Of a stretch of DNA of 26,792 nucleotides, positions 14-26,650 are shown piece after piece. The stretch's first letter is position 1. Each line of letters starts with the position of its first letter. The translations under genes and the position numbers were made by a program. The DNA comes from Macrostomum lignano (lineage: Eukaryota). The DNA lies in the NCBI GenBank assembly GCA_002269645.1, contig NIVC01001318.1, positions 1 through 26,792 of the forward strand, in the 5' to 3' direction. The notes beneath the pieces were generated by a model. The model was not told where the DNA came from. It saw nothing but the letters and a program-made list of their open reading frames with translations, and ran no database searches.

Positions 14-83
14 ATGATGATATTACTGGTCCGTGTTTCTGAGCCACCCGTATTGCGGTGCTGCTGATAACTACCAGATCTGA
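14..83 (+). ncRNA. SNORD18: Box C/D snoRNA U18, diverged copy 1
   Basis: Box C ATGATGA at 14-20, guide TGGTCCGTGTTT at 27-38, D' box CTGA at 39-42, C'-like TGCTGA at 62-67, box D CTGA at 80-83, terminal stem AGGCA(6-10)/TGCCT(85-89). The guide is the reverse complement of the conserved LSU rRNA segment AAACACGGACCA, the known U18 target (yeast 25S Am649 and the equivalent vertebrate 28S site). The D'+5 rule lands on that A. Confidence 0.93.
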
Positions 84-138
84 ATGCCTTTGAGGATGCG
101 TCTATTTATATTAGACATTATTAGATCCATATACAGCA

Positions 139-212
139 ATGATGAGATTTCTGGTCCGTGTTTCTGATTACCAATTTTAAACGGTAATGCTGTTACTTTT
201 TACCAGAACTGA
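139..212 (+). ncRNA. SNORD18: Box C/D snoRNA U18, diverged copy 2
   Basis: Box C at 139-145, same guide plus D' CTGA (164-167), internal hairpin TTACC/GGTAA, box D at 209-212, 6-bp terminal stem ACAGCA(133-138)/TGCTGT(214-219). Confidence 0.93.
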
Positions 213-252
213 ATGCTGTTTAAATTAGTCTCAAAACCTGAAATAATTAACA

Positions 253-3200
253 ATGATGAGATTTCTGGTCCGTGTTTCTGATTACCCATTCAAGCGGTAA
301 TGCTGTTACTTTTTACCAGAACTGAATGCCAATTTATCCAAGTTTATAATAGTAGAAGTTTAAATTAAAGGTAGGTAAATCAGGAGTTAGATGTTGATAA
401 CAATCAATGATGAGATTTCTGGTCCGTGTTTCTGATTACCCATTCAAGCGGTAATGCTGTTACTTTTTACCAGAACTGAATGCCAATTTATCCAAGTTTA
501 TAATAGTAGAAGTTTAAATTAAAGGTAGGTAAATCAGGAGTTAGATGTTGATAACAATCAATGATGAGATTTCTGGTCCGTGTTTCTGATTACCCATTCA
601 AGCGGTAATGCTGTTACTTTTTACCAGAACTGAATGCCAATTTATCCAAGTTTATAATAGTAGAAGTTTAAATTAAAGGTAGGTAAATCAGGAGTTAGAT
701 GTTGATAACAATCAATGATGAGATTTCTGGTCCGTGTTTCTGATTACCCATTCAAGCGGTAATGCTGTTACTTTTTACCAGAACTGAATGCCAATTTATC
801 CAAGTTTATAATAGTAGAAGTTTAAATTAAAGGTAGGTAAATCAGGAGTTAGATGTTGATAACAATCAATGATGAGATTTCTGGTCCGTGTTTCTGATTA
901 CCCATTCAAGCGGTAATGCTGTTACTTTTTACCAGAACTGAATGCCAATTTATCCAAGTTTATAATAGTAGAAGTTTAAATTAAAGGTAGGTAAATCAGG
1001 AGTTAGATGTTGATAACAATCAATGATGAGATTTCTGGTCCGTGTTTCTGATTACCCATTCAAGCGGTAATGCTGTTACTTTTTACCAGAACTGAATGCC
1101 AATTTATCCAAGTTTATAATAGTAGAAGTTTAAATTAAAGGTAGGTAAATCAGGAGTTAGATGTTGATAACAATCAATGATGAGATTTCTGGTCCGTGTT
1201 TCTGATTACCCATTCAAGCGGTAATGCTGTTACTTTTTACCAGAACTGAATGCCAATTTATCCAAGTTTATAATAGTAGAAGTTTAAATTAAAGGTAGGT
1301 AAATCAGGAGTTAGATGTTGATAACAATCAATGATGAGATTTCTGGTCCGTGTTTCTGATTACCCATTCAAGCGGTAATGCTGTTACTTTTTACCAGAAC
1401 TGAATGCCAATTTATCCAAGTTTATAATAGTAGAAGTTTAAATTAAAGGTAGGTAAATCAGGAGTTAGATGTTGATAACAATCAATGATGAGATTTCTGG
1501 TCCGTGTTTCTGATTACCCATTCAAGCGGTAATGCTGTTACTTTTTACCAGAACTGAATGCCAATTTATCCAAGTTTATAATAGTAGAAGTTTAAATTAA
1601 AGGTAGGTAAATCAGGAGTTAGATGTTGATAACAATCAATGATGAGATTTCTGGTCCGTGTTTCTGATTACCCATTCAAGCGGTAATGCTGTTACTTTTT
1701 ACCAGAACTGAATGCCAATTTATCCAAGTTTATAATAGTAGAAGTTTAAATTAAAGGTAGGTAAATCAGGAGTTAGATGTTGATAACAATCAATGATGAG
1801 ATTTCTGGTCCGTGTTTCTGATTACCCATTCAAGCGGTAATGCTGTTACTTTTTACCAGAACTGAATGCCAATTTATCCAAGTTTATAATAGTAGAAGTT
1901 TAAATTAAAGGTAGGTAAATCAGGAGTTAGATGTTGATAACAATCAATGATGAGATTTCTGGTCCGTGTTTCTGATTACCCATTCAAGCGGTAATGCTGT
2001 TACTTTTTACCAGAACTGAATGCCAATTTATCCAAGTTTATAATAGTAGAAGTTTAAATTAAAGGTAGGTAAATCAGGAGTTAGATGTTGATAACAATCA
2101 ATGATGAGATTTCTGGTCCGTGTTTCTGATTACCCATTCAAGCGGTAATGCTGTTACTTTTTACCAGAACTGAATGCCAATTTATCCAAGTTTATAATAG
2201 TAGAAGTTTAAATTAAAGGTAGGTAAATCAGGAGTTAGATGTTGATAACAATCAATGATGAGATTTCTGGTCCGTGTTTCTGATTACCCATTCAAGCGGT
2301 AATGCTGTTACTTTTTACCAGAACTGAATGCCAATTTATCCAAGTTTATAATAGTAGAAGTTTAAATTAAAGGTAGGTAAATCAGGAGTTAGATGTTGAT
2401 AACAATCAATGATGAGATTTCTGGTCCGTGTTTCTGATTACCCATTCAAGCGGTAATGCTGTTACTTTTTACCAGAACTGAATGCCAATTTATCCAAGTT
2501 TATAATAGTAGAAGTTTAAATTAAAGGTAGGTAAATCAGGAGTTAGATGTTGATAACAATCAATGATGAGATTTCTGGTCCGTGTTTCTGATTACCCATT
2601 CAAGCGGTAATGCTGTTACTTTTTACCAGAACTGAATGCCAATTTATCCAAGTTTATAATAGTAGAAGTTTAAATTAAAGGTAGGTAAATCAGGAGTTAG
2701 ATGTTGATAACAATCAATGATGAGATTTCTGGTCCGTGTTTCTGATTACCCATTCAAGCGGTAATGCTGTTACTTTTTACCAGAACTGAATGCCAATTTA
2801 TCCAAGTTTATAATAGTAGAAGTTTAAATTAAAGGTAGGTAAATCAGGAGTTAGATGTTGATAACAATCAATGATGAGATTTCTGGTCCGTGTTTCTGAT
2901 TACCCATTCAAGCGGTAATGCTGTTACTTTTTACCAGAACTGAATGCCAATTTATCCAAGTTTATAATAGTAGAAGTTTAAATTAAAGGTAGGTAAATCA
3001 GGAGTTAGATGTTGATAACAATCAATGATGAGATTTCTGGTCCGTGTTTCTGATTACCCATTCAAGCGGTAATGCTGTTACTTTTTACCAGAACTGAATG
3101 CCAATTTATCCAAGTTTATAATAGTAGAAGTTTAAATTAAAGGTAGGTAAATCAGGAGTTAGATGTTGATAACAATCAATGATGAGATTTCTGGTCCGTG

Positions 3201-6200
3201 TTTCTGATTACCCATTCAAGCGGTAATGCTGTTACTTTTTACCAGAACTGAATGCCAATTTATCCAAGTTTATAATAGTAGAAGTTTAAATTAAAGGTAG
3301 GTAAATCAGGAGTTAGATGTTGATAACAATCAATGATGAGATTTCTGGTCCGTGTTTCTGATTACCCATTCAAGCGGTAATGCTGTTACTTTTTACCAGA
3401 ACTGAATGCCAATTTATCCAAGTTTATAATAGTAGAAGTTTAAATTAAAGGTAGGTAAATCAGGAGTTAGATGTTGATAACAATCAATGATGAGATTTCT
3501 GGTCCGTGTTTCTGATTACCCATTCAAGCGGTAATGCTGTTACTTTTTACCAGAACTGAATGCCAATTTATCCAAGTTTATAATAGTAGAAGTTTAAATT
3601 AAAGGTAGGTAAATCAGGAGTTAGATGTTGATAACAATCAATGATGAGATTTCTGGTCCGTGTTTCTGATTACCCATTCAAGCGGTAATGCTGTTACTTT
3701 TTACCAGAACTGAATGCCAATTTATCCAAGTTTATAATAGTAGAAGTTTAAATTAAAGGTAGGTAAATCAGGAGTTAGATGTTGATAACAATCAATGATG
3801 AGATTTCTGGTCCGTGTTTCTGATTACCCATTCAAGCGGTAATGCTGTTACTTTTTACCAGAACTGAATGCCAATTTATCCAAGTTTATAATAGTAGAAG
3901 TTTAAATTAAAGGTAGGTAAATCAGGAGTTAGATGTTGATAACAATCAATGATGAGATTTCTGGTCCGTGTTTCTGATTACCCATTCAAGCGGTAATGCT
4001 GTTACTTTTTACCAGAACTGAATGCCAATTTATCCAAGTTTATAATAGTAGAAGTTTAAATTAAAGGTAGGTAAATCAGGAGTTAGATGTTGATAACAAT
4101 CAATGATGAGATTTCTGGTCCGTGTTTCTGATTACCCATTCAAGCGGTAATGCTGTTACTTTTTACCAGAACTGAATGCCAATTTATCCAAGTTTATAAT
4201 AGTAGAAGTTTAAATTAAAGGTAGGTAAATCAGGAGTTAGATGTTGATAACAATCAATGATGAGATTTCTGGTCCGTGTTTCTGATTACCCATTCAAGCG
4301 GTAATGCTGTTACTTTTTACCAGAACTGAATGCCAATTTATCCAAGTTTATAATAGTAGAAGTTTAAATTAAAGGTAGGTAAATCAGGAGTTAGATGTTG
4401 ATAACAATCAATGATGAGATTTCTGGTCCGTGTTTCTGATTACCCATTCAAGCGGTAATGCTGTTACTTTTTACCAGAACTGAATGCCAATTTATCCAAG
4501 TTTATAATAGTAGAAGTTTAAATTAAAGGTAGGTAAATCAGGAGTTAGATGTTGATAACAATCAATGATGAGATTTCTGGTCCGTGTTTCTGATTACCCA
4601 TTCAAGCGGTAATGCTGTTACTTTTTACCAGAACTGAATGCCAATTTATCCAAGTTTATAATAGTAGAAGTTTAAATTAAAGGTAGGTAAATCAGGAGTT
4701 AGATGTTGATAACAATCAATGATGAGATTTCTGGTCCGTGTTTCTGATTACCCATTCAAGCGGTAATGCTGTTACTTTTTACCAGAACTGAATGCCAATT
4801 TATCCAAGTTTATAATAGTAGAAGTTTAAATTAAAGGTAGGTAAATCAGGAGTTAGATGTTGATAACAATCAATGATGAGATTTCTGGTCCGTGTTTCTG
4901 ATTACCCATTCAAGCGGTAATGCTGTTACTTTTTACCAGAACTGAATGCCAATTTATCCAAGTTTATAATAGTAGAAGTTTAAATTAAAGGTAGGTAAAT
5001 CAGGAGTTAGATGTTGATAACAATCAATGATGAGATTTCTGGTCCGTGTTTCTGATTACCCATTCAAGCGGTAATGCTGTTACTTTTTACCAGAACTGAA
5101 TGCCAATTTATCCAAGTTTATAATAGTAGAAGTTTAAATTAAAGGTAGGTAAATCAGGAGTTAGATGTTGATAACAATCAATGATGAGATTTCTGGTCCG
5201 TGTTTCTGATTACCCATTCAAGCGGTAATGCTGTTACTTTTTACCAGAACTGAATGCCAATTTATCCAAGTTTATAATAGTAGAAGTTTAAATTAAAGGT
5301 AGGTAAATCAGGAGTTAGATGTTGATAACAATCAATGATGAGATTTCTGGTCCGTGTTTCTGATTACCCATTCAAGCGGTAATGCTGTTACTTTTTACCA
5401 GAACTGAATGCCAATTTATCCAAGTTTATAATAGTAGAAGTTTAAATTAAAGGTAGGTAAATCAGGAGTTAGATGTTGATAACAATCAATGATGAGATTT
5501 CTGGTCCGTGTTTCTGATTACCCATTCAAGCGGTAATGCTGTTACTTTTTACCAGAACTGAATGCCAATTTATCCAAGTTTATAATAGTAGAAGTTTAAA
5601 TTAAAGGTAGGTAAATCAGGAGTTAGATGTTGATAACAATCAATGATGAGATTTCTGGTCCGTGTTTCTGATTACCCATTCAAGCGGTAATGCTGTTACT
5701 TTTTACCAGAACTGAATGCCAATTTATCCAAGTTTATAATAGTAGAAGTTTAAATTAAAGGTAGGTAAATCAGGAGTTAGATGTTGATAACAATCAATGA
5801 TGAGATTTCTGGTCCGTGTTTCTGATTACCCATTCAAGCGGTAATGCTGTTACTTTTTACCAGAACTGAATGCCAATTTATCCAAGTTTATAATAGTAGA
5901 AGTTTAAATTAAAGGTAGGTAAATCAGGAGTTAGATGTTGATAACAATCAATGATGAGATTTCTGGTCCGTGTTTCTGATTACCCATTCAAGCGGTAATG
6001 CTGTTACTTTTTACCAGAACTGAATGCCAATTTATCCAAGTTTATAATAGTAGAAGTTTAAATTAAAGGTAGGTAAATCAGGAGTTAGATGTTGATAACA
6101 ATCAATGATGAGATTTCTGGTCCGTGTTTCTGATTACCCATTCAAGCGGTAATGCTGTTACTTTTTACCAGAACTGAATGCCAATTTATCCAAGTTTATA

Positions 6201-7871
6201 ATAGTAGAAGTTTAAATTAAAGGTAGGTAAATCAGGAGTTAGATGTTGATAACAATCAATGATGAGATTTCTGGTCCGTGTTTCTGATTACCCATTCAAG
6301 CGGTAATGCTGTTACTTTTTACCAGAACTGAATGCCAATTTATCCAAGTTTATAATAGTAGAAGTTTAAATTAAAGGTAGGTAAATCAGGAGTTAGATGT
6401 TGATAACAATCAATGATGAGATTTCTGGTCCGTGTTTCTGATTACCCATTCAAGCGGTAATGCTGTTACTTTTTACCAGAACTGAATGCCAATTTATCCA
6501 AGTTTATAATAGTAGAAGTTTAAATTAAAGGTAGGTAAATCAGGAGTTAGATGTTGATAACAATCAATGATGAGATTTCTGGTCCGTGTTTCTGATTACC
6601 CATTCAAGCGGTAATGCTGTTACTTTTTACCAGAACTGAATGCCAATTTATCCAAGTTTATAATAGTAGAAGTTTAAATTAAAGGTAGGTAAATCAGGAG
6701 TTAGATGTTGATAACAATCAATGATGAGATTTCTGGTCCGTGTTTCTGATTACCCATTCAAGCGGTAATGCTGTTACTTTTTACCAGAACTGAATGCCAA
6801 TTTATCCAAGTTTATAATAGTAGAAGTTTAAATTAAAGGTAGGTAAATCAGGAGTTAGATGTTGATAACAATCAATGATGAGATTTCTGGTCCGTGTTTC
6901 TGATTACCCATTCAAGCGGTAATGCTGTTACTTTTTACCAGAACTGAATGCCAATTTATCCAAGTTTATAATAGTAGAAGTTTAAATTAAAGGTAGGTAA
7001 ATCAGGAGTTAGATGTTGATAACAATCAATGATGAGATTTCTGGTCCGTGTTTCTGATTACCCATTCAAGCGGTAATGCTGTTACTTTTTACCAGAACTG
7101 AATGCCAATTTATCCAAGTTTATAATAGTAGAAGTTTAAATTAAAGGTAGGTAAATCAGGAGTTAGATGTTGATAACAATCAATGATGAGATTTCTGGTC
7201 CGTGTTTCTGATTACCCATTCAAGCGGTAATGCTGTTACTTTTTACCAGAACTGAATGCCAATTTATCCAAGTTTATAATAGTAGAAGTTTAAATTAAAG
7301 GTAGGTAAATCAGGAGTTAGATGTTGATAACAATCAATGATGAGATTTCTGGTCCGTGTTTCTGATTACCCATTCAAGCGGTAATGCTGTTACTTTTTAC
7401 CAGAACTGAATGCCAATTTATCCAAGTTTATAATAGTAGAAGTTTAAATTAAAGGTAGGTAAATCAGGAGTTAGATGTTGATAACAATCAATGATGAGAT
7501 TTCTGGTCCGTGTTTCTGATTACCCATTCAAGCGGTAATGCTGTTACTTTTTACCAGAACTGAATGCCAATTTATCCAAGTTTATAATAGTAGAAGTTTA
7601 AATTAAAGGTAGGTAAATCAGGAGTTAGATGTTGATAACAATCAATGATGAGATTTCTGGTCCGTGTTTCTGATTACCCATTCAAGCGGTAATGCTGTTA
7701 CTTTTTACCAGAACTGAATGCCAATTTATCCAAGTTTATAATAGTAGAAGTTTAAATTAAAGGTAGGTAAATCAGGAGTTAGATGTTGATAACAATCAAT
7801 GATGAGATTTCTGGTCCGTGTTTCTGATTACCCATTCAAGCGGTAATGCTGTTACTTTTTACCAGAACTGA
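253..7871 (+). ncRNA. SNORD18: Tandem array of 50 U18 box C/D snoRNA copies (73 nt from box C to box D each)
   Basis: Each unit reads ATGATGA-gatttc-TGGTCCGTGTTT-CTGA-ttacc..ggtaa-TGCTGT-..accagaa-CTGA. Box C starts at 253, 407, 561 ... 7799; (7799-253)/154 = 49, giving 50 copies. The last box D ends at 7871. Confidence 0.92.
253..7871 (+). repeat. Perfect 154-bp tandem repeat (73-nt snoRNA + 81-nt AT-rich spacer), 49.5 units
   Basis: Exact 154-bp period with no net indel. Sequence at position n matches position n+4620 (30 units) where compared. I saw no variant unit by eye. Confidence 0.98.
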
Positions 7872-7964
7872 AATTACTTAGTCTATGAAAGTTGAGTTTA
7901 TTGATTAATTAAGGCAGGTGTTTTTATACTGTTAATATCGTTAATGCATGCTTAAGCTGACAAC

Positions 7965-8201
7965 ATGACCAACACCAAGGGTATTCGCCGCGGCACGCGG
8001 TACATGTTTGCCAGGGATTTCCGACGCCGCGGTGCCCTCCCCCTGTCCACCTACATGCGGGTGTTTAAACGCGGTGATATTGTCGATATTAAAGGCAACG
8101 GCAGCATACAGAAAGGTATGCCGTATAAAACCTATCACGGCAAAACTGGCCGCGTGTACAATGTCACACCACACGCTGTCGGTGTGATTGTTAATAAGCA
8201 G
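7965..8201 (+). CDS. RPL21: 60S ribosomal protein L21 (eL21), first coding exon (aa 1-79)
   Basis: [19 protein letters not shown]...[32 protein letters not shown]...NKQ is the classic eL21 sequence. Donor CAG|GTAAGT at 8201/8202. Probable upstream acceptor cttaag| at 7956, 8 nt before the ATG. Confidence 0.98.
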
Positions 8202-8284
8202 GTAAGTTCGCGTAAAATTTATACAGAATCCTGAATTTTAAAACTCCTGACCACTTGTAGTCACCCTGCAATGACTGTCAGTCC

Positions 8285-8645
8285 TGTCACTTACCTGTCA
8301 TTTGTGTGACTCACCTGTCATTTGAGTGACACCTGTTATCTTTGTGACTCACCTGTTATTTGAGTGACTCATCTGTAATTTGAGTGACTCACCTGTTATT
8401 TGAGTGACTCATCTGTCATTTGAGTGACTCACCTGTCATTTGAGTGACTCGCCTGTCATTTGAGTGACACCTGTCATCTGAGTGACTCATCTGTCATCTT
8501 AGTGACTCACCTGTAATTTGAGTGACACCTGTCATCTGAGTGACTCATCTGTCATCTGAGTGACTCACCTGTCATCTGAGTGACTCACCTGTTATTTAAG
8601 TGACTCACCTGTTTTTTGAGTTACACCTGTCATCTGAATGACACA
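8285..8645 (+). repeat. ~20-bp minisatellite (CACCTGTCATTTGAGTGACT), ~18 copies, in the RPL21 intron
   Basis: Directly visible 18-20-bp tandem variants. Confidence 0.95.
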
Positions 8646-8679
8646 TAACGATCGCCTCACCACCCCACAAATTCACCAG

Positions 8680-8925
8680 GTGCGCAACCGCGTGATCCCC
8701 AAACGGATCAACGTCCGCATCGAGCACGTGAATCCCAGCAAGTGCCGACTGGACTTTCTTCGCCGCGTCAAAGAGAACGACATCAAGCGACGCGAGGCCA
8801 AAGCCGCTGGCAAGAAAATCTCCCTGAAGCGTCGGCCGCAGGGTCCGAGGCGCGCCACCATTGTGAAGACTAAGAAGAACAAGCCCCAGCTGCTGGAGCC
8901 GCTGCCCTACGAGCTGATCGCTTAG
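8680..8925 (+). CDS. RPL21: 60S ribosomal protein L21, last coding exon (aa 80-160)
   Basis: Acceptor caccag| at 8679, phase 0. VRNRVIPKRINVRIEHVNPSKCRLDFLRRVKEND...PLPYELIA*. The spliced total is 160 aa, the usual eL21 length. Confidence 0.98.
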   Translation: MRNRVIPKRINVRIEHVNPSKCRLDFLRRVKENDIKRREAKAAGKKISLKRRPQGPRRATIVKTKKNKPQLLEPLPYELIA

Positions 8926-9013: not shown

Positions 9014-9019
9014 AATAAA
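9014..9019 (+). terminator. Probable RPL21 polyadenylation signal
   Basis: AATAAA 89 nt after the stop, followed by a GU-rich tract (tgtggttgtgttgttgttgttgg, ~9031-9053). Confidence 0.7.
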
Positions 9020-9159: not shown

Positions 9160-9525
9160 TGTACAGCCTCCCAGATCCTCAGTTTCTGGGTCAGCCTCCC
9201 AGATCCTCAGTTGTTGGGCCACCAGCCTCCCAGATCCTCAGTTTTTGGGCCACAACTCCCCCCCAGATCCTCAGTTGTTGGGCCACCCCCCCCCCAGATC
9301 CTCAGTTGTTGGGCCACCAGCCTCCCAGATCCCCTGTTGCTGGGCCATCCAGCCTCCCAGATCCCCACTTGCTGGGCCAGCCTCCCAGATCCTCTGTTGC
9401 TGTGCCACCACTGCCTCCCAGCTCCTCAGTTGCTGGGCCAGCCTCCCGGATCCTCAGTTGCTGGGGGCCGGCCTCCCAGATCCTCAGTTGCTGGGCCAGC
9501 CTCCCAGATCCCCAGTTGCTAGGGC
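9160..9525 (+). repeat. ~28-32-bp minisatellite (GGGCCAGCCTCCCAGATCCTCAGTTGCT), ~12 copies
   Basis: Tandem variants visible. They account for the repetitive ORFs 9145-9522 and 9159-9671 and the N-terminus of 9245-10336. Confidence 0.95.
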
Positions 9526-11766: not shown

Positions 11767-14140
11767 ATGTCTCTAAGCAAGCCTCGTGCAACAGCATTTC
11801 GACATGAGTGGTTACAGCGATCCATTGATGGACGAGTCCTTAGCGAGTGGCTTCAGCCTGATCGAAGTGACGAACTGCTTGGCTTCTGCACCGTGTGCAA
11901 AAAATCATTTCACCTCGGCACTAGTGGGTTCGGCGCAGTTACAGCCCACGCCCAAGGCAAGAAGCACAAGAGTCGATTGCCAGTCATGAATGAGACTGGG
12001 ATAGCACACTTTTTTCCTACTCAAGGCAGCAAGCCATCTTTCACTGCCATGAAGAAGGCTGACGCAGAAGTGCTAATGGCAGAGCTGCGACTTGGAATCC
12101 ATTTTATTGAGCACAATATTGCGTACAATACAGCCGACCACTCGGGTGTGTACCCAGCTATGTTTCATGATAGCAAAATTGCTCAAGACATGAAGTGCCA
12201 TCGCACAAAACTGTGCTATCTTGTTAATCACGCTCTTGCACCAGTGATGCGTGATGAGATGATTCAAGACTTGAACTCTGGCTGCGGACTGTTTTCCCTT
12301 TCTATTGACGAGTCATCTGATGGGGCACGAAAGCACATGGCAGTTGTAATATCATTTGTGTCGTCGAAGAAGGGAAGGCTGTGTACAACTGCCTTGAAAA
12401 CAGTTGAAGTTTCTGACTGCTCAGCCGCTGCTCTGAAAGAGGAAGTTTTGAAGATTCTCGATGAATTCAACATTCCGATTAGGAACTGTGTTAGCATATC
12501 AACAGATGGACCAGCAGTTATGGTTGGAAAGTTTAACGGCTTCCAAAAAATAATGCATGACTTTGCATCTCATCTTGTTTCCATTGGACCATGCAGTTTG
12601 CATATTGTCTCCAATGCGGTTCGACGTGCATGTGAAGCCTTTGATGGAAATGTAGAGGACTTCGCTGATGAAGTGTTCTCCTACTTTCAGACCTCGAAAA
12701 GGTGGACGCGTTATAACAAAGTTCAGTCACTGCTTCAAGTGGCCCAGCATCGCATGTTGCGGCGCGTTGAAACAAGATGGGTGCAGCTTTTGCCTGTTGT
12801 TAATAGGCTTATTGAGCAATATGATTCTCTGGAAGAATTCTTTGTGAAGAATCCATCTCTGATTGAGCAAAAGACCAAAAAGACCAAAGAAATTGCTGAG
12901 CACCTAAAGTCGACGCATACACTGCTTAATCTGCAATTTCTGGCTGCTGTCTTGCCGCATCTAGACCAATTCGAGAAGGCATTTCAGACAGAGGAGCCGT
13001 GTGTCCATCTTTTGCATGGAGAAGTCCGCAATTTGTTTAGGCAGACTTTGTCATTCTTTTTAAATCCAGCGCACATTCAGGAGAACAATCGACATTTGAG
13101 AAATTTGTCGTTGGAAGGCAAATACTTCCTCTCTAATGAAGCCATCTTTATCGGCGAAGCAGCTAAAGAGACATTAAAAAAGGCTTGTCGGACACTCAAC
13201 AGAAGCTCTTTTTCCTACGTGTTCGCACCTTCTATCGTGAACTTGCATTGTACTTGCAAGAACATTTGCCTCTGTCGAATCCTGTCTTACGCTCGCTACA
13301 ATTTCTGGATCCGCAATATCCTATGAAAGTCGGTCTCGCAGCAGCTACTACATCGCTTGCTGCATGTAACCTAGCCAAACAAATGGAATATACACCTGAT
13401 TCCGTATCAAAAATTGATTCCGAATGGCGATGCTTCCTCGTTGACCAACAGGTAGTGGCTTTGGCTAAGGACAATGATGTGGTTACATTTTGGCTTCGCG
13501 TGTCAGCCCTAGAGCTTGGTGGTCAAAAAAAGTACGGCACACTAACCCGACTAGCTTTGGGTGCTCTGACCATTCAGCCAGGCAACGCTGCAGTAGAGCG
13601 AGTCTTTAGCGAGTTATCGGACTTGTTAACGAAAAAACGCAACAAGCTTGGTGAATTGTCTATTGATGCCTGCCTTTTTGTTCGACACTACATCCGCCAA
13701 TCTGGCTAGTTGGTGAGGAGCCTACAACCTGCGAAAACTTTCCATTGACAGACGTCTACGTTCAGTCTGCTGGGAAGGCTCGTTCAGTGTACATGGAATT
13801 CCTTCAACAGCAAAGAGATGCTGATAAGGCCAAGAAAGATGCACGGATTGCCGCTAAACAGTTGGAAGAGCAGCTTGCTGCTGAGATTGAAGTAAACAAG
13901 AAGAAGATGGAATTGGAGGCGGCTGAAAAAAAGTTGGCTGCAGAGCGTGAAATAATTGAAGCTGAGAAGCGAGCTGCTTCGGCTATGCTGCTCGAGTATC
14001 AGAAAAAAATGAGGACTTTAGAAGAGCGAGAGGCCAAAGCTCTACATGATGACGCCAAGCTGCTGAAGCGAAAGTTGAAGACTCAAGACGAGCTGGCTGC
14101 AGAAGCACTGAAAAAGGCCGCCAAGATGATATGCAAATGA
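11767..14140 (+). CDS. hAT transposase, ~790 aa, split by two apparent 1-nt deletions (~13177-13181 and ~13705)
   Basis: N-terminal zinc finger CTVC...HAQGKKH; catalytic motifs SIDES and STDG; CSLH (CxxH); ETRW; C-terminal GNAAVERVFS (catalytic E, dimerisation region); then a charged coiled-coil tail. ORFs 11767-13326, 13185-13709 and 13745-14140 join by adding one base at each of the two sites. Confidence 0.9.
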
Positions 14141-14408: not shown

Positions 14409-15104
14409 GTCTTGGCAGCAGTCTAATTAATAAGCAAAGTATTGTATCTCTAGTAGTTAACTTTACTTAATTAGTTTTACTTTTATTAACAGTTGAATAG
14501 AACCTAAAGAATGTTTAATGCTTGTAGTTGTAACTAAATAGCAGTTGTGCCTGTGTGTCACGTGACACGTCAAATCTTTTCCGTAAAGTGCAAACATTGA
14601 GCCAGCCATTGTTTTTTCGTTAAAGTAGAATAAAAAGAACTTTTTGCCATCCACAGCCAATGTGATGGTTGACAACTTGATTGTAAACTGGAAGTCTAGA
14701 ATACATTGACTTAGACTTGCTTACTTATTTTGAGTTTAAAAAAATGCTTGTTCAAAAGTTTTTTTCCATAGTTTTGTTGAAAATCTTATCATATTTAATA
14801 GGTTAAGCTATCTGCGGAATTTTCTTTAGGCTGCGGAGGAAAAATGGGTAGATTGGAGTGGGAACACTGATGCAGTTCTAAAGCCTATTTGCATTTTTGC
14901 AGCCTAAATGTATGGAAAGCATCTTTTGGATCTCTATTTAGCAGCCTTGATATTGATAGATTGACATTGAAAGGAGAGGATTTTGATGGAATTCAGTTTC
15001 ATGAAAAGAATTTGATATATAAATTTCTGTTTCACAGAGACAATTTCGATGGCTTACAGTTTCCCAAAGAAAATTTTGATAGATTTCTGTTTTAGGGAGG
15101 GATT

Positions 15105-17055: not shown

Positions 17056-17136
17056 GTAAGAAAACTGGTCATTTTCATTATTAATGCATTATTTATTCAG
17101 GTATAATCTTCTTTGTGAGAATCATCATTTAGTTCA

Positions 17137-17933
17137 GTTGAGACCACTGCTCAATATTAGTTGAGGACCACTGCTCAATATTAGTTGAGGACGACTGCTC
17201 AATATTAGTTGAGGACGACTGCTCAATATTAGTTGAGGACCACTGCTCAATATTAGTTGAGGACCACTGCTCAATATTAGTTGAGGACCACTGCTCAATA
17301 TTAGTTGAGGACCACTGCTCAATATTAGTTGAGGACCACTGCTCAATATTAGTTGAGGACCACTGCTCAATATTAGTTGAGGACCACTGCTCAATATTAG
17401 TTGAGGACCACTGCTCAATATTAGTTGAGGACCACTGCTCAATATTAGTTGAGGACCACTGCTCAATATTAGTTGAGGACCACTGCTCAATATTAGTTGA
17501 GGACCACTGCTCAATATTAGTTGAGGACCACTGCTCAATATTAGTTGAGGACCACTGCTCAATATTAGTTGAGGACCACTGCTCAATATTAGTTGAGGAC
17601 CACTGCTCAATATTAGTTGAGGACCACTGCTCAATATTAGTTGAGGACCACTGCTCAATATTAGTTGAGGAACACTGCTCAATATTAGTTTAAGACTACT
17701 GCTCAAAGTTAGTTAAGGAACACTGCTCAATATTAGTTGAGGACCACTGCTCAATATTAGTTGAGGACCACTGCTCAATATTAGTTGAGGACCACTGCTC
17801 AAAGTTAGTTAAGGAACACTGCTCAATATTAGTTTAAGACTACTGCTCAATATTAGTTTAAGACTACTGCTCAATATTAGTTAAAGACTACTGCTCAATA
17901 TTACTCGTAGTTAAGGCCAGTGGTCAATATTAG
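17137..17933 (+). repeat. 24-bp minisatellite (TTGAGGACCACTGCTCAATATTAG), ~33 copies, in a TMEM209 intron
   Basis: Near-perfect tandem repeat; source of the (LILSSGPQ)n minus-strand ORF. Confidence 0.98.
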
Positions 17934-18398: not shown

Positions 18399-18499
18399 GT
18401 TAGTCAGAAAAGTGTTTGCCTTGTTTTAACCACAGATACTAGAATAATTAGTTGTGCCACTCGCAATTAACCTTGTAAACAAAAGTAGAGTCTACTCTA

Positions 18500-18925
18500 G
18501 TTCAGCCAATGGGAGAGCAGTAAGGAGAGAGGTCCAAGTCAGACGGATGAAACTCTGTTTAGGGGGGAGGCCCAATCTAGCTCAGCCAATGAGAGAGCAG
18601 TAAGGAGAGAGGTGCAAGTCAGACGGACGAAGCTCAGCCTAGGGACAGGCCCAATCTAGCTCAGCCAATGGGAGAGCAGTAAGGAGAGAGGTCCAAGTCA
18701 GACGGACGAAGCTCAGCCTAGGGGACAAGCCCAATCTAGCTCAGCCAATGGGAGAGCAGTAAGGAGAGAGGTGCAAGTCAGACGGACGAAGCTCAGCCTA
18801 GGGACAGGCCCAATCTAGCTCAGCCAATGGGAGAGCAGTAAGGAGAGAGGTCCAAGTCAGACGGACGAAGCTCAGCCTAGGGACAGGCCCAATCTAGCTC
18901 GTAGTTCAGCCAATGAGAGAGCAGC
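18500..18925 (+). repeat. ~80-bp minisatellite, ~5.3 copies, in a TMEM209 intron
   Basis: TCAGCCAATG recurs at ~18502, 18582, 18661, 18741, 18820 and 18906. Confidence 0.95.
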
Positions 18926-19021
18926 AAGCCAGAGGCGATTTTTACAGCTTCAAAAACTTTAACTATTGGAAAGGCAAAAAACACTACTGTTGGTACTAAC
19001 TTTACTACTTCTGCTTTACAG

Positions 19022-19713: not shown

Positions 19714-19883
19714 GTGGGGCTGGGGCTCGGTTTTTGCTGGATTTGGTAGATTGTGTCTAGAGTTGGTTGAGTTGCAGGTGGATTAGTAGTTTTGGTCGAT
19801 GGTTAACCTTAGCAGTTGGTTTGGTAAATTGGGTAGAGTGGGCTGGTAGGTTCGGCATATTTATTCGAGTAGTGGATTTTGAT

Positions 19884-20310
<427 letters not shown>

Positions 20311-21470: not shown

Positions 21471-21842
21471 AAACTTACTGTGAGTAATGAGGTGTAGTTT
21501 TTGCAAACTGCTGGTTGAAACTGTATTTTTTTACTTATAATAAAAGTATGGCACCCGACTGTTGTGTTTAATGTTGTTGAAAATTCGTTAAGTGTTTGCT
21601 GTCGTACAACTACTACTGTTCATCTTATGCGTATTATACTGCATGTTACCCCATGAAAGCATTTTCGTAAATACGTAATATTGCACTTGTACCTGCAACA
21701 TGTCTTTATTATCAACATCTGGTTGCTATGAAAAAATATAATAATATATGCATAATTTTACCAAGTTAAAAAAACTTTCGTAACAAAAGATATATTTTTT
21801 AGCTTTAGTTCATCAGTTTTTATCGAAATGGCTGCTACCCAA

Positions 21843-22367
21843 TAATTCTCCAAGGTCATTCAGATCTGGAAATTCCCAACCACTTTCTCCAAGGTCATTT
21901 AGATCTGGAAACTCCCAACCACTATTTCCCCAAGGTCATTCAGATCTGGGAATTCCAACCACTTTCTCCAATGTCATTTAGATCTGGAAACTCCCAACCA
22001 CTATTTCCCCAAGGTCATTCAGATCTGGAAATTCCCACCTACTATTTCCCCAAGGTCATTCAGATCTAGAAATCGATCCCAACCACTATTTCTCCCAGGT
22101 CATTCAGATTTGGGAATTCCCATCCACTATTTCTACAATGTCATTCGGACCTGGAAATTCCCAACCACATTTTCTCCGAGGTCATTAAAATCTGGGAATT
22201 CCAAACCACTTTTTCTCCAAGGTCATTCAGATTTGGGAATTCCCATCCACTATTTCTCCAAGGTCATTCAGATCTGGGAATTCCCAACCACTGTTTTTCC
22301 AAAGTCATTCAGATCTGGAAACTCCCATCCACTATTTCCCCAAGGTCATTCAGATAATCAGATCTAG
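21843..22367 (+). repeat. ~41-bp minisatellite (AGATCTGGAAATTCCCAACCACTATTTCTCCAAGGTCATTC), ~13 copies
   Basis: Tandem variants visible. Confidence 0.95.
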
Positions 22368-22931: not shown

Positions 22932-23850
22932 CTAACCCATCAGAAACATCGCCCTCCACAACAAACCCATCAGAAAAATCGCCTCCCTCAATAAACCCAT
23001 CAGAAACATCGCCCCCCCCTCAACAAACCCATCAGAAACATCGCCCCCCTCAACAAACCCATCAGAAACATCGCCCCCCTCAACAAACCCATCAGAAACA
23101 TCGCCCCCCACAACAAACCATCAGAAACATCGCCCCCCCCTCAACAAACCCATCAGAAACATCGCCCCCCCCTCAACAAACCCATCAGAAACATCGCCCC
23201 CTCAACAAACCCATCAGAAACATCGCCCCCCTCAACAAACCCATCAGAAACATCGCCCCCCACAACAAACCCATCAGAAAAATCGCCCCCCTCAACAAAC
23301 CCGTCAGAAACATCGCCTCCCTCAATAAACCCATCAGAAACATCGCCCCCCACAACAAAACCATCAGAAAAATCGCCCCCCACAACAAAACCATCAGAAA
23401 AATCGCCCCCTCAACAAACCCATCAGAAACATCGCCCCCTCAACAAACCCGTCAGAAACATCGCCTCCCTCAATAAACCCATCAGAAACATCGCCCCCCA
23501 CAACAAACCCATCAGAAAAATCTCCCCCCCTCCACAACAAACCCATGAGAAAAATCGCCCCCCCTCCACAACAAACCCATGAGAAAAATCGCCCCCCAAC
23601 AACAAACGCATCAGAAACATCACCCCCCTCAACAAACCTGTCAGAAAAATCGCCCCTAACAAACCCATCAGAAACATCGCCTTCCTCAACAAACCCGTGA
23701 GAAAAATCGCCCCCTAACAAACCCATCAAAAATTTCCCTCGACAAACCCATCAGAAAAATCACGCCCCCCCGAACAAACCCATCAGAACCCCCCCCCTCA
23801 CAAACGCATCAGAAAATGCCCGACAATACAAACCCATAAAAAATCGCTCC
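22932..23850 (+). repeat. ~27-29-bp minisatellite (ACAAACCCATCAGAAACATCGCCCCCC), ~30 copies, SLC6 intron
   Basis: Tandem variants visible, degenerating towards the 3' end. Confidence 0.96.
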
Positions 23851-23925
23851 CACAAAAATCCTCCGGAGAAATCGCCACTTTTCTTAAATCTCACCGAAAA
23901 AGAACATTTATCGAATGTCGCACAG

Positions 23926-24103: not shown

Positions 24104-24229
24104 GTGAGAATCAGCTGACTTTTGAAAATCGGTTAAAAAAATTCGCACCTTTTGTGATGCGTGCCTTCGAAGTTACCTGTTATTTCGCTAGTGTAATCTA
24201 AAATAGAACCATTTAGGAATTTGGGTATC

Positions 24230-24823
24230 AATTTTAGCGCCATTTGGTAGCTATTTTAGCGCCATATGAATAGATTTTTAGCGCCATTTGGTACCCATTT
24301 TAGCTCCATTTTGGTAGCTATTTTAGCGCCATTTGAATAGATTTTTAGCGCCATTTGGGTAGCTATTTTAGCGCCATTTGAATAGATTTTTAGCGCCATT
24401 TGGGTAGCTATTTTAGCGCCATTTGAATAGATTTTTAGCGCCATTCGGGTAGCTATTTTAGCGCCATTTGGGTACCCATTTTAGCGCCATTCGGGTAGCT
24501 ATTTTAGCGCCATTCGGGTACCCATTTTAGCGCCATTCGGGTAGCTATTTTAGCGCCATTCGGGTACCCATTTTAGCGCCATTCGGGTAGCTATTTTAGC
24601 GCCATTTGGGTACCCATTTTAGCGTCATTCAGGTAGCTATTTTAGCGCCATTTGGGTAGCTATTTTAGCGCCATTCGGGTAGCTATTTTAGCGCCATTCG
24701 GGTAGCTATTTTAGCGTCATTCGGGTACCCATTTTAGCGCCATTCGGGTACCCATTTTAGCGCCATTCGGGTACCCATTTTAGCGCCATTCGGGTACCCA
24801 TTTTAGCGCCATATGGGTACCCA
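24230..24823 (+). repeat. ~22-23-bp minisatellite (TTTTAGCGCCATTCGGGTAGCTA / ...GGGTACCCA), ~25 copies, SLC6 intron
   Basis: Tandem variants visible. Confidence 0.96.
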
Positions 24824-25069: not shown

Positions 25070-25107
25070 GTGAGTCATGCTCGGAAATTAGTTTGGGAGG
25101 TTCCGGA

Positions 25108-25990
25108 TTTTCCATAGAATCTATCAATCGGGGATGTCCCATAGAATCTATCGATTGATTTCCCATAGAATGTATCAATCGAGATATCCCATAGAATCTA
25201 TCGATCGAGGATTTCCTATAGAATCTATTGATTGATTTCCCATAGAATCTATCGATCGAGGATTTCCTATAGAATCTATCGATCGGGGATTGCCCATAGA
25301 ATCTATTAATCGGGGTTTGCCATAGAATCTATCGATTGAGATTTCCCATAGAATCCATGGATCGGGGATTTCCCATAAAATCTATCGATAGATTTCCCAT
25401 AGAATCTATCAATCGATGATTTCCCATAGAATCCATGGATCGGGGATTTCCCATAGAATCTATCGATCGGGGGATTTCTCATAAAATCTATCGATTGATT
25501 TCCCATAGAATCTATCAATCGATGATTTCCATAGAATCCATGGATCGGGGATTTCCTATAGAATCTATCGATTGGGGATTTCCCATAGAATCTATTAATC
25601 GGGGTTTGCCATGGAATCTATCAATCGATGATTTCCCATAGAATCCATGGATCGGAGATTTCCCATAGAATCTATCAATCGATGATTTTCTCATAGAATC
25701 CATGGATCGGGGATTTCCCATAGAATCTATTGATCGGGGATTTCCCATAAAATCTATCGATGATTTCCCATAGAATCTATCAATCGATGATTTCTCATAG
25801 AATCCATGGATCGGGGATTTCCCATAGAATCTATTGATCGGGATTTCCCATAAAATCTATCGATGATTTCCATAGAATCTATCAATCGATGATTTCCCAT
25901 AGAATCTATGGATCGGGGATTTCCCATAGAATCTATCGATCGGGGATTTCCCATAGAATCTATTAATCGGGGTTTCTAAAAAATCTATCG
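25108..25990 (+). repeat. ~22-26-bp minisatellite (GATTTCCCATAGAATCTATCGATCGG) with mixed variants, SLC6 intron
   Basis: Tandem variants visible, roughly 35 units. Confidence 0.96.
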
Positions 25991-26068
25991 ATGGAATTTT
26001 CCGTAGAATTACAGATTTTCGGGAAAGTCAATATTTAATATCCAAGCGCGCAATCCATAACAAAACAG

Positions 26069-26250: not shown

Positions 26251-26650
26251 ATTCCAGCTTCATCTATGGATTCCAGCTTCATCTATGGATTCTAGATTCA
26301 TCTGTGGATTCCAGCTTCATCTTTGGATTCCAGCTTCATCTATGGATTCCAGCTTTATCTATGGATTCCAGCTTCATCTATGGATTCCAGCTTCATCTGT
26401 GGATTCCAGCTTCATCTGTGGATTCCAGCTTCATCTATGGATTCGAGCTTCATCTATGGATTCCAGCTTCATCTGTGGATTCCAGCTTCATCTGTGGATT
26501 CCAGCTTCATCTGTAGATTCCAGCTACATCTATGGATTCGAGCTTCATCTGTGGATTCCAGCTTCATCTATGATTCCAGCTTCATCTATGTATTCCAGCT
26601 TCATCTGTGGATTCCAGCTTCATCTATCCATGATTTTCCAGCTTCATCTA
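26251..26650 (+). repeat. 21-bp minisatellite (TGGATTCCAGCTTCATCTA/GTG), ~18 copies, SLC6 intron
   Basis: Tandem variants visible. Confidence 0.96.

Follow-up and report, generated by a model that had tools for sequence, protein, structure and literature searches.

Tandem U18-type box C/D snoRNA genes next to RpL21 in Macrostomum lignano

We analysed the entire contig NIVC01001318.1 (26,792 bp; hereafter the window) of the Macrostomum lignano assembly Mlig_3_7 (GCA_002269645.1). Its first part, 14–7871, carries 52 cassettes for small nucleolar RNAs (snoRNAs) of the box C/D class and the U18 (SNORD18) type, all on the + strand: two diverged copies followed by 50 identical bodies with a period of 154 bp. 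A two-exon gene for the ribosomal protein RpL21 (eL21) lies directly downstream on the same strand. The original prediction, made from the sequence alone, had placed the array at exactly this span, which is bounded by the start of the first C box at 14 and the end of the last D box at 7871, and had proposed 50 identical and two diverged copies with a 154-bp unit; motif counting, Tandem Repeats Finder (TRF) and cutting of the array into units confirmed these figures.

Layout of the array

The 16-mer TGGTCCGTGTTTCTGA matched the window 52 times with 0 mismatches, from 27 to 7827 and always on the + strand, compared with 0.16 matches expected from dinucleotide shuffles of the window. Tolerating up to 3 mismatches added no further match anywhere in the window. 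Successive matches are spaced by 125 nt, 114 nt and then 49 times by 154 nt. TRF described the 154-bp tandem array (251–7872, + strand) as 49.5 copies with 100% matches and 0 indels, and cutting it into units gave 49 identical 154-mers plus a 50th unit that shares the first 75 bases and is otherwise unique. The array can be written as (73-nt body + 79-nt spacer) × 49 + body, with a snoRNA body at both ends; the bodies lie at 253 + 154k to 325 + 154k for k = 0 to 49, the last at 7799–7871.

Spacers between cassettes are 41–79 nt long. The first of the 49 identical 79-nt spacers (326–404, + strand) contains a donor-like AAG|GTAGGT (368–376), an AT-rich TTTATAATAG (343–352) and the hairpin GUUGAU/AUCAAU. 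There is no variation whatever among the array units, in snoRNA or in spacer. Copy 1 begins 13 nt from the contig end, so its upstream context is missing and 52 is a lower bound; the wording 'at least 52' in the original prediction therefore holds, for a number taken from a single assembly.

From 5' to 3', the snoRNA body runs AUGAUGA (C), GAUUUC, UGGUCCGUGUUU, CUGA (D'), a hairpin, UGCUGU (C'), UACUUUUUACCAGAA and CUGA (D), with 73 nt from C to D in the array body. The AUGAUGA box C and the terminal CUGA box D, 70–74 nt apart, are present in 52/52 copies, as is the antisense element UGGUCCGUGUUU with its CUGA D' box. The C' box is degenerate, with UGCUGU in the array units but UGCUGA in copy 1. 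Of the complete C/guide/D'/C'/D cassette that had been described, C, guide, D' and D are thus intact, and only C' departs from that description.

For each of the three sequence variants, folding predicted a hairpin between D' and C' and, immediately inside the boxes, an internal stem of 7 bp (UUCUGGU/ACCAGAA). In the array body this hairpin is UUACC-CAUUCAAGC-GGUAA, and the stretch between C' and D reads UACUUUUU-ACCAGAA. The hairpin loop separates the variants, with CCAUUCAAGC in the array versus CAAUUUUAAAC in copy 2. In the minimum free energy fold of the array unit, the local hairpin GUUGAU/AUCAAU takes in the two 5'-most bases of box C.

At the fifth position upstream of D' stands a U, whose partner is the second-last A of the 5'-AAACA-3' within 5'-AAACACGGACCA-3'. 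By the box D+5 rule, applied here to D', the predicted methylation target, on which the guide would place fibrillarin, is the A of 5'-AAAC-A-CGGACCA-3' in large subunit (LSU) rRNA, within AAACACGG of 28S. The yeast name of this site is Am649 and the Neurospora name Am635, and in human 28S it is the position served by U18; M. lignano 28S is assumed to carry the target, given its universal conservation. A second guide upstream of box D was considered and rejected: ACCAGAA forms the 3' side of the internal stem, and outside the stem the sequence of copy 1 differs from that of the array.

Assignment of the cassettes to U18

Run with an E-value threshold, Rfam returned SNORD18 (RF00093) as the top family for every copy examined, with 34.7, 33.9, 32.2 and 32.0 bits (E = 1e-4 to 5e-4; 600 nt searched), all below the cut-off; the 154-bp array itself gave 32.2–34.7 bits. 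The guide together with D' equals the SNORD18 consensus at 15/15 positions. Two features cost score: 5 nt are deleted between box C and the guide, and the model misaligns the 3' half.

As a control, we scanned public metagenome contigs for a C box, the U18 guide and D', and searched 20 of the loci so obtained with Rfam. The control U18 loci, from environmental eukaryotes, scored 31.7–62.4 bits against SNORD18, with 13/21 matches below 41 bits, including U18 genes within classic plant snoZ199-U18-snoR64 clusters. Because these loci score alike, 32–35 bits is normal for real U18 outside the seed taxa. In the environmental plant-type snoZ199-U18-snoR64 clusters L011, L019, L041, L047 and L048, the U18 member scored 33–42 bits, and the Rfam cut-off is therefore conservative for U18.

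U18 directs methylation of this A through a D' guide of 11–12 bp in Neurospora, both yeasts, Arabidopsis and human (PMC2780460). Judged by guide and architecture, the cassettes are U18 orthologues, at scores below the curated Rfam threshold. The identity of guide and D' to the SNORD18 consensus supports the U18-type box C/D assignment made originally. Lack of an Rfam U18 hit had been named in advance as evidence against that assignment; formally this outcome occurred, since no match reached the gathering score, but SNORD18 was the best family at 32–35 bits, as for bona fide controls, so the identity stands unrefuted.

Copies 1 and 2 compared with the amplified copy

Copy 2 (134–219, + strand; C box 139–145, guide and D' 152–167, D box 209–212; SNORD18 33.9 bits) is identical to the array body at 70/74 positions, and all differences fall in the D'–C' hairpin loop. 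Its 40-nt flanks on both sides align with those of the array no better than shuffled sequence. Copy 1 (6–89, + strand; C box 14–20, guide and D' 27–42, C' UGCUGA, D box 80–83; SNORD18 32.0 bits), the most diverged, shares 57/73 positions with the array body and keeps boxes C, D', C' and D as well as the entire guide. The stem of its D'–C' hairpin is built from other bases, CACC/GGUG versus UUACC/GGUAA. Conservation across copies 1, 2 and the array follows function, the pattern expected of functional snoRNA paralogues. Within the array there is no variation, and the array is therefore uninformative on selection.

Terminal stems abut the boxes in both diverged copies, AGGCA/UGCCU in copy 1 (−7.1 kcal/mol) and the 6-bp ACAGCA/UGCUGU in copy 2 (−8.6 kcal/mol). 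An external stem was rejected for the array units, whose flank duplex, at −5.0 kcal/mol, does not exceed shuffles (mean −5.7 kcal/mol). The most canonical cassettes are thus copies 1 and 2; with no terminal stem, the amplified variant may be processed or assembled less efficiently, and the internal stem beside the boxes might compensate.

These differences bear on the idea that the amplified units are largely dead, a snoRNA-derived satellite, with functional U18 supplied by copies 1 and 2 or by other loci and the array itself mere ballast for transcription or for the genome. The contrast in terminal stems, the local hairpin that overlaps the start of box C, the degenerate UGCUGU C' box and a genome rich in neutral tandem repeats (PMC5730564) all fit such a view. 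However, the C, D and D' boxes and the guide are perfect, and the 7-bp internal stem could join C and D. Moreover, some vertebrate C/D snoRNAs are processed even though they have no terminal stem. Overall, we consider it somewhat unlikely that the array is dead.

A second contig and the RpL21 acceptor

In a second contig, NIVC01001317.1 (L001), at least 46 identical units of the same sequence stand ahead of the same RpL21 gene; the first of these units abuts a scaffold gap of ~1.9 kb of N. Over 14 kb the window and L001 run collinear at 99.93% identity, after which they diverge fully without a gap. The point of divergence (window 14910, L001 16953) marks a structural difference, an insertion or deletion, between two genomic copies. 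The two contigs are thus distinct genomic copies or haplotypes, and such redundancy fits the 180 Mb of duplicated blocks in this assembly (PMC5730564). The 3' junction of the array to unique sequence is identical in both.

The spliced RpL21 protein is 100% identical to M. lignano BOX15_Mlig028121g1; the next match in the protein database, which holds no close relative of this RpL21 from Macrostomum, is 73% identical. A unique 79-nt stretch (7872–7950, + strand) runs from the last U18 to the predicted trans-splice acceptor of RpL21; it ends ..AATGCATG in the window, as opposed to ..AATTCCAG in L001. The first exon (7951–8201, + strand) comprises a 14-nt 5' untranslated region after the predicted spliced-leader (SL) acceptor, the ATG at 7965 and 79 codons, and ends at the donor CAG|GTAAGT. 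The intron (8202–8679) is filled by a 20-bp minisatellite at 8289–8642 (~18 copies, 83% matches). The second coding exon (8680–8925), behind the acceptor CACCAG|, has 81 codons plus the stop, and an AATAAA follows at 9014.

Only 3 substitutions occur in the 14-kb contig alignment, and they fall within five bases, 15–19 nt upstream of the RpL21 ATG (window 7944–7948, L001 9980–9984), where TTCCAG in L001 becomes TGCATG in the window. L001 reads GTTAATTCCAG|CTTAAGCTGACAACATG and the window reads GTTAATGCATG|CTTAAG.... TTCCAG fits the published M. lignano SL acceptor motif [T/C]TNCAG (YTNCAG), and TGCATG equals the last six nucleotides of the M. lignano SL, CGGTCTCTTACTGCGAAGACTCAATTTATTGCATG (PMC8629364). 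Pilon polishing of Mlig_3_7 used RNA-seq as well as genomic reads (PMC5730564). The TGCATG of the window is probably a Pilon mis-correction by SL-bearing RpL21 mRNA reads. Because the 3 substitutions turn the acceptor into the 3' end of the SL in an RNA-seq-polished assembly, they point, indirectly but specifically, to SL trans-splicing of RpL21 at 7950|7951. Similar Pilon mis-corrections may flag further trans-splice sites in Mlig_3_7.

With its end 79 nt upstream of the SL acceptor, the array would accordingly lie in the outron or an upstream region, or in an intercistronic one if another gene precedes it, rather than in a demonstrated cis-intron. Joining the SL (...GCAUG) to CUUAAGCUGACAACAUGA (window 7951–7967) would also give a 6-codon upstream open reading frame (ORF) from the SL AUG, with a UGA stop that would overlap the RpL21 AUG (AUGA). 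A possible same-strand terminal ORF with no assignable function lies at 37–243 of L001 (..LLRSDLQTDESVDRHLTNRIF, then a stop codon), at least ~2.7 kb upstream of the array and beyond the N gap; should this ORF be a genuine gene, the array and RpL21 could belong to an operon-like unit. As a separate observation, the RpL21 locus of Schistosoma mansoni (L003) is neighboured by a mir-3492 precursor (81 bits) and a sub-threshold match to the type I hammerhead ribozyme (28.2 bits), at 14507–14584 and 19808–19847.

Copy number and polishing

Mlig_3_7 was assembled with Canu from PacBio reads, polished with Pilon and scaffolded with SSPACE (PMC5730564). Because short reads cannot be placed in a 7.6-kb array of 154-bp units, polishing pulls the units toward the majority sequence, and a demonstrable polishing error, the SL-like substitutions, lies 80 nt from the array. 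Other arrays on the contig, with short units that reads can anchor, keep 4–23% unit divergence (77–96% identity). The 100% unit identity is therefore not reliable, but dozens of units in two separately assembled contigs are much harder to blame on artefact.

The extreme form of this concern is that there are few true U18 copies and that both the length and the uniformity of the array stem from the assembler and Pilon. In the window the array runs up to the contig start, and in L001 to the ~1.9-kb N gap; 100% identity over 7.6 kb is unusual, the polishing error just downstream is clear, and the short reads used by Pilon are unplaceable within 154-bp repeats (PMC5730564). Yet polishing erases variants and does not create units, a 7.6-kb array is within PacBio read length, and 50 and at least 46 units were recovered in two separately assembled Canu contigs that share the 3' junction and differ in distal sequence. 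An artefact on this scale is very unlikely.

Expression of the array

Position and orientation suggest how the array might be expressed. It would be transcribed by RNA polymerase II (Pol II) within the RpL21 outron or an upstream precursor, and U18 small nucleolar ribonucleoproteins (snoRNPs) would be freed by exonucleolytic trimming after trans-splicing, which would tie U18 output to expression of the ribosomal protein gene. A stronger version, in which a single Pol II precursor, the RpL21 outron, yields ~50 processed U18 in trypanosome or Euglena style and array length is a selected, heritable dosage control, strikes us as improbable. A scan for bacterial-type promoters and terminators was discarded as uninformative for a eukaryote.

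A different mode of expression would have the snoRNAs in SNORD116-like introns, one each, separated by micro-exons, or transcribed independently from the AT-rich spacer element. The donor-like AAG|GTAGGT recurs in all 49 spacers, and several AG sites 17–45 nt downstream of the D box offer candidate acceptors (..AUAAUAG| or ..AUUAAAG|). In addition, the last U18 lies 79 nt before the RpL21 acceptor, a distance typical of intronic C/D snoRNAs in mammals. On the other hand, there is no donor-like motif between copies 1 to 3, and the micro-exons would be only 0–28 nt long. GTAGG also does not conform to GT[G/A]AG, the donor motif published for M. lignano, and a cis donor, if used, would conflict with SL addition at the RpL21 acceptor, which is expected where no cis donor lies upstream (PMC8629364). 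We hold such a mode to be conceivable but quite unlikely.

Origin of the array

We compared the copy number with 120 environmental U18 loci, of which 106 have one copy, nine have two, five have three and none has more, a soft control in that short-read contigs can collapse repeats. Small groups of two or three U18 genes are thus frequent elsewhere. Human has three U18 isoforms, in introns of RPL4 (PMC3035437), the classical host gene. The unusual copy number claimed at the outset was borne out by these comparisons, with >50 in the window against one to three per environmental locus and the three human isoforms. In one environmental eukaryote (L032), three U18 genes at 64–412, spaced 124 and 153 nt apart, directly precede the C-terminal exon of RPL4 (479–900; Pfam Ribos_L4_asso_C, E = 1e-25), an instance of U18–RPL4 linkage outside vertebrates. 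Copies 1–3 of the window, spaced 125 and 114 nt apart, resemble this type of cluster, which by analogy is likely to be the ancestral state.

Starting from such a small cluster of U18 paralogues (copies 1, 2, 3 and so on) with spacers of 40–80 nt, two adjacent copies would have misaligned, and unequal crossing-over would have grown (body + 79-nt spacer)n + body to ~50 units. Unequal exchange between two paralogues predicts an array that starts and ends with a snoRNA body, as seen here. The genomic background is conducive: more than half of the M. lignano genome is repetitive, with ~15% simple and tandem repeats (PMC5730564), and TRF found more than 12 other tandem arrays in the window, one of them within the RpL21 intron.

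Elsewhere on the contig, at least nine further mini- or microsatellites lie at 9164–9525, 17136–17903, 18496–18900, 19881–20308, 21839–22355, 22934–23876, 24219–24819, 25105–25992 and 26251–26627; their units are 4–79 bp long with 79–96% unit identity, and tandem repeats make up about one quarter of the contig outside the U18 array. At 11767–13709, two + strand ORFs of 519 and 174 aa overlap; they contain a hAT C-terminal dimerisation domain (E = 1.8e-8), match DUF4371 weakly and look like a hAT-type transposase, apparently frameshifted. The ORF at 18966–19640 matches Pfam CytochromB561_N (TMEM209-like) marginally, at 28.7 bits where the cut-off is 27.3, and probably belongs as an exon to a neighbouring gene.

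We take the amplification to be recent, and probably neutral or at most mildly advantageous. As the spacer varies no more than the RNA does, neutral expansion is likelier than a selected dosage device. A selected dosage amplification would mean that all ~50 copies are transcribed in one precursor and processed, and that the excess U18 is needed for its level or for full methylation. For this speak the intact boxes and guide in every unit, the co-orientation of the array with adjoining RpL21, a gene of a highly expressed type, the presence of the array in two distinct contigs and the 100% unit identity compared with 77–96% in the other arrays of the contig. Perfect identity, however, equally fits a very recent unselected expansion or polishing, the perfectly conserved spacer gives no sign of selection within the array, and the amplified copy is the one with no terminal stem. 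The output of snoRNPs is, besides, normally limited by their core proteins. Finally, one to three copies suffice elsewhere, as in the 120 loci and in human (PMC3035437). We thus regard a selected dosage amplification as unlikely. Of the two options offered originally, a functional gene caught in local tandem expansion fits better, and dosage amplification is undemonstrated.

We favour, with a probability of roughly 60%, the reading that these are genuine U18 orthologues expanded by unequal crossing-over in a tandem-repeat-rich genome, in which RpL21-linked expression is inferred and a selected dosage effect undemonstrated. Several observations weigh against it. No Rfam match anywhere in the window reached its gathering score (41 bits for SNORD18), and the flanks of the array units, pairing no better than shuffles, weaken the case for a stable snoRNP for the 50 copies. 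The 5' edge of the array is reached in neither contig, with the contig end in one and the N gap in the other, and copy number and 100% identity rest on one PacBio/Pilon assembly. The start of transcription, co-transcription with RpL21 and processing are all inferred from DNA, and the donor-like motif in every spacer would, if used, favour cis-splicing over the outron model. Furthermore, no U18 motif or Rfam match was found within 10 kb of RpL21 in S. mansoni, in Cichlidogyrus, a monogenean (L004), or in one Logan contig (L005); because no U18 lies by RpL21 at these three other loci, the U18–RpL21 association is not conserved.

Discussion

The cassettes share with U18/SNORD18 (RF00093, clan CL00047) the C box, a 12-nt antisense element directly 5' of D', the same LSU target A, an internal stem linking the post-C to the pre-D region and a ribosomal protein gene alongside. 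They differ in that the copies score 32–35 bits against a gathering score of 41, with the 3' half unaligned to the model, and in that the spacer from C box to guide is 5 nt shorter, so that the internal stem overlaps the guide. The neighbouring gene also differs, being RpL21 here and RPL4 in human (PMC3035437) and in L032, as does the number of copies, >50 as opposed to one to three. Small intronic U18 clusters such as that of L032, with three genes 124–153 nt apart, match copies 1–3 of the window, and the maximum in the 120 loci was three per locus.

With SNORD115 and SNORD116 (and SNORD113/114), the array shares tens of head-to-tail C/D genes on one strand that arose by tandem duplication. 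The guides of these mammalian arrays, however, are orphans, each in its own intron of a long, imprinted host that is non-coding, and the units are diverged and on the kilobase scale. By contrast, the M. lignano array consists of a canonical, universally conserved rRNA guide in identical 154-bp units with no demonstrated exon structure.

The tandemly repeated or polycistronic snoRNA clusters of trypanosomatids, Euglena and plants are similar in having canonical rRNA guides on one strand and short spacers; theirs are processed from a common precursor, which for the array is a prediction. Trypanosomatids and Euglena, like M. lignano, use SL trans-splicing (reviewed in PMC6562600). These clusters usually mix several snoRNAs and are repeated a few times, whereas here one snoRNA is repeated ~50 times in an animal, beside a protein-coding gene.

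The array also resembles the minisatellites and satellites of M. lignano, which form head-to-tail arrays, number more than 12 others in this 27-kb contig and account for ~15% of the genome together with simple repeats (PMC5730564). Unlike ordinary minisatellites, its unit holds a complete conserved RNA gene and shows 100% identity instead of 77–96%. About 50 copies of a canonical guide are genuinely unusual, and this genomic background makes neutral expansion likely.

Literature searches on M. lignano snoRNAs and on snoRNA-derived satellites returned no account of this array or of any snoRNA from M. lignano, and snoRNAs are not mentioned in the M. lignano genome paper (PMC5730564). The 'snoRNA' predictions for the Schistosoma W element that these searches brought up are weak and unrelated to the array, and we set them aside.

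If the expansion was recent and neutral, the locus would be a neat but ordinary case of a gene caught in minisatellite dynamics. Should the array prove real and expressed, it would, to judge from the literature searches, be an unreported animal case of a canonical, universally conserved rRNA-methylation guide at ~50 tandem copies; it would also exemplify snoRNA genes sited within an outron, that of a ribosomal protein gene with SL trans-splicing. M. lignano, for which transgenesis is available, would then be a tractable system in which to study snoRNA dosage and the release of snoRNAs from outrons. Repeat masking with TRF, as applied to this genome (PMC5730564), would hide these genes, and snoRNA inventories of repeat-rich genomes can miss such loci.

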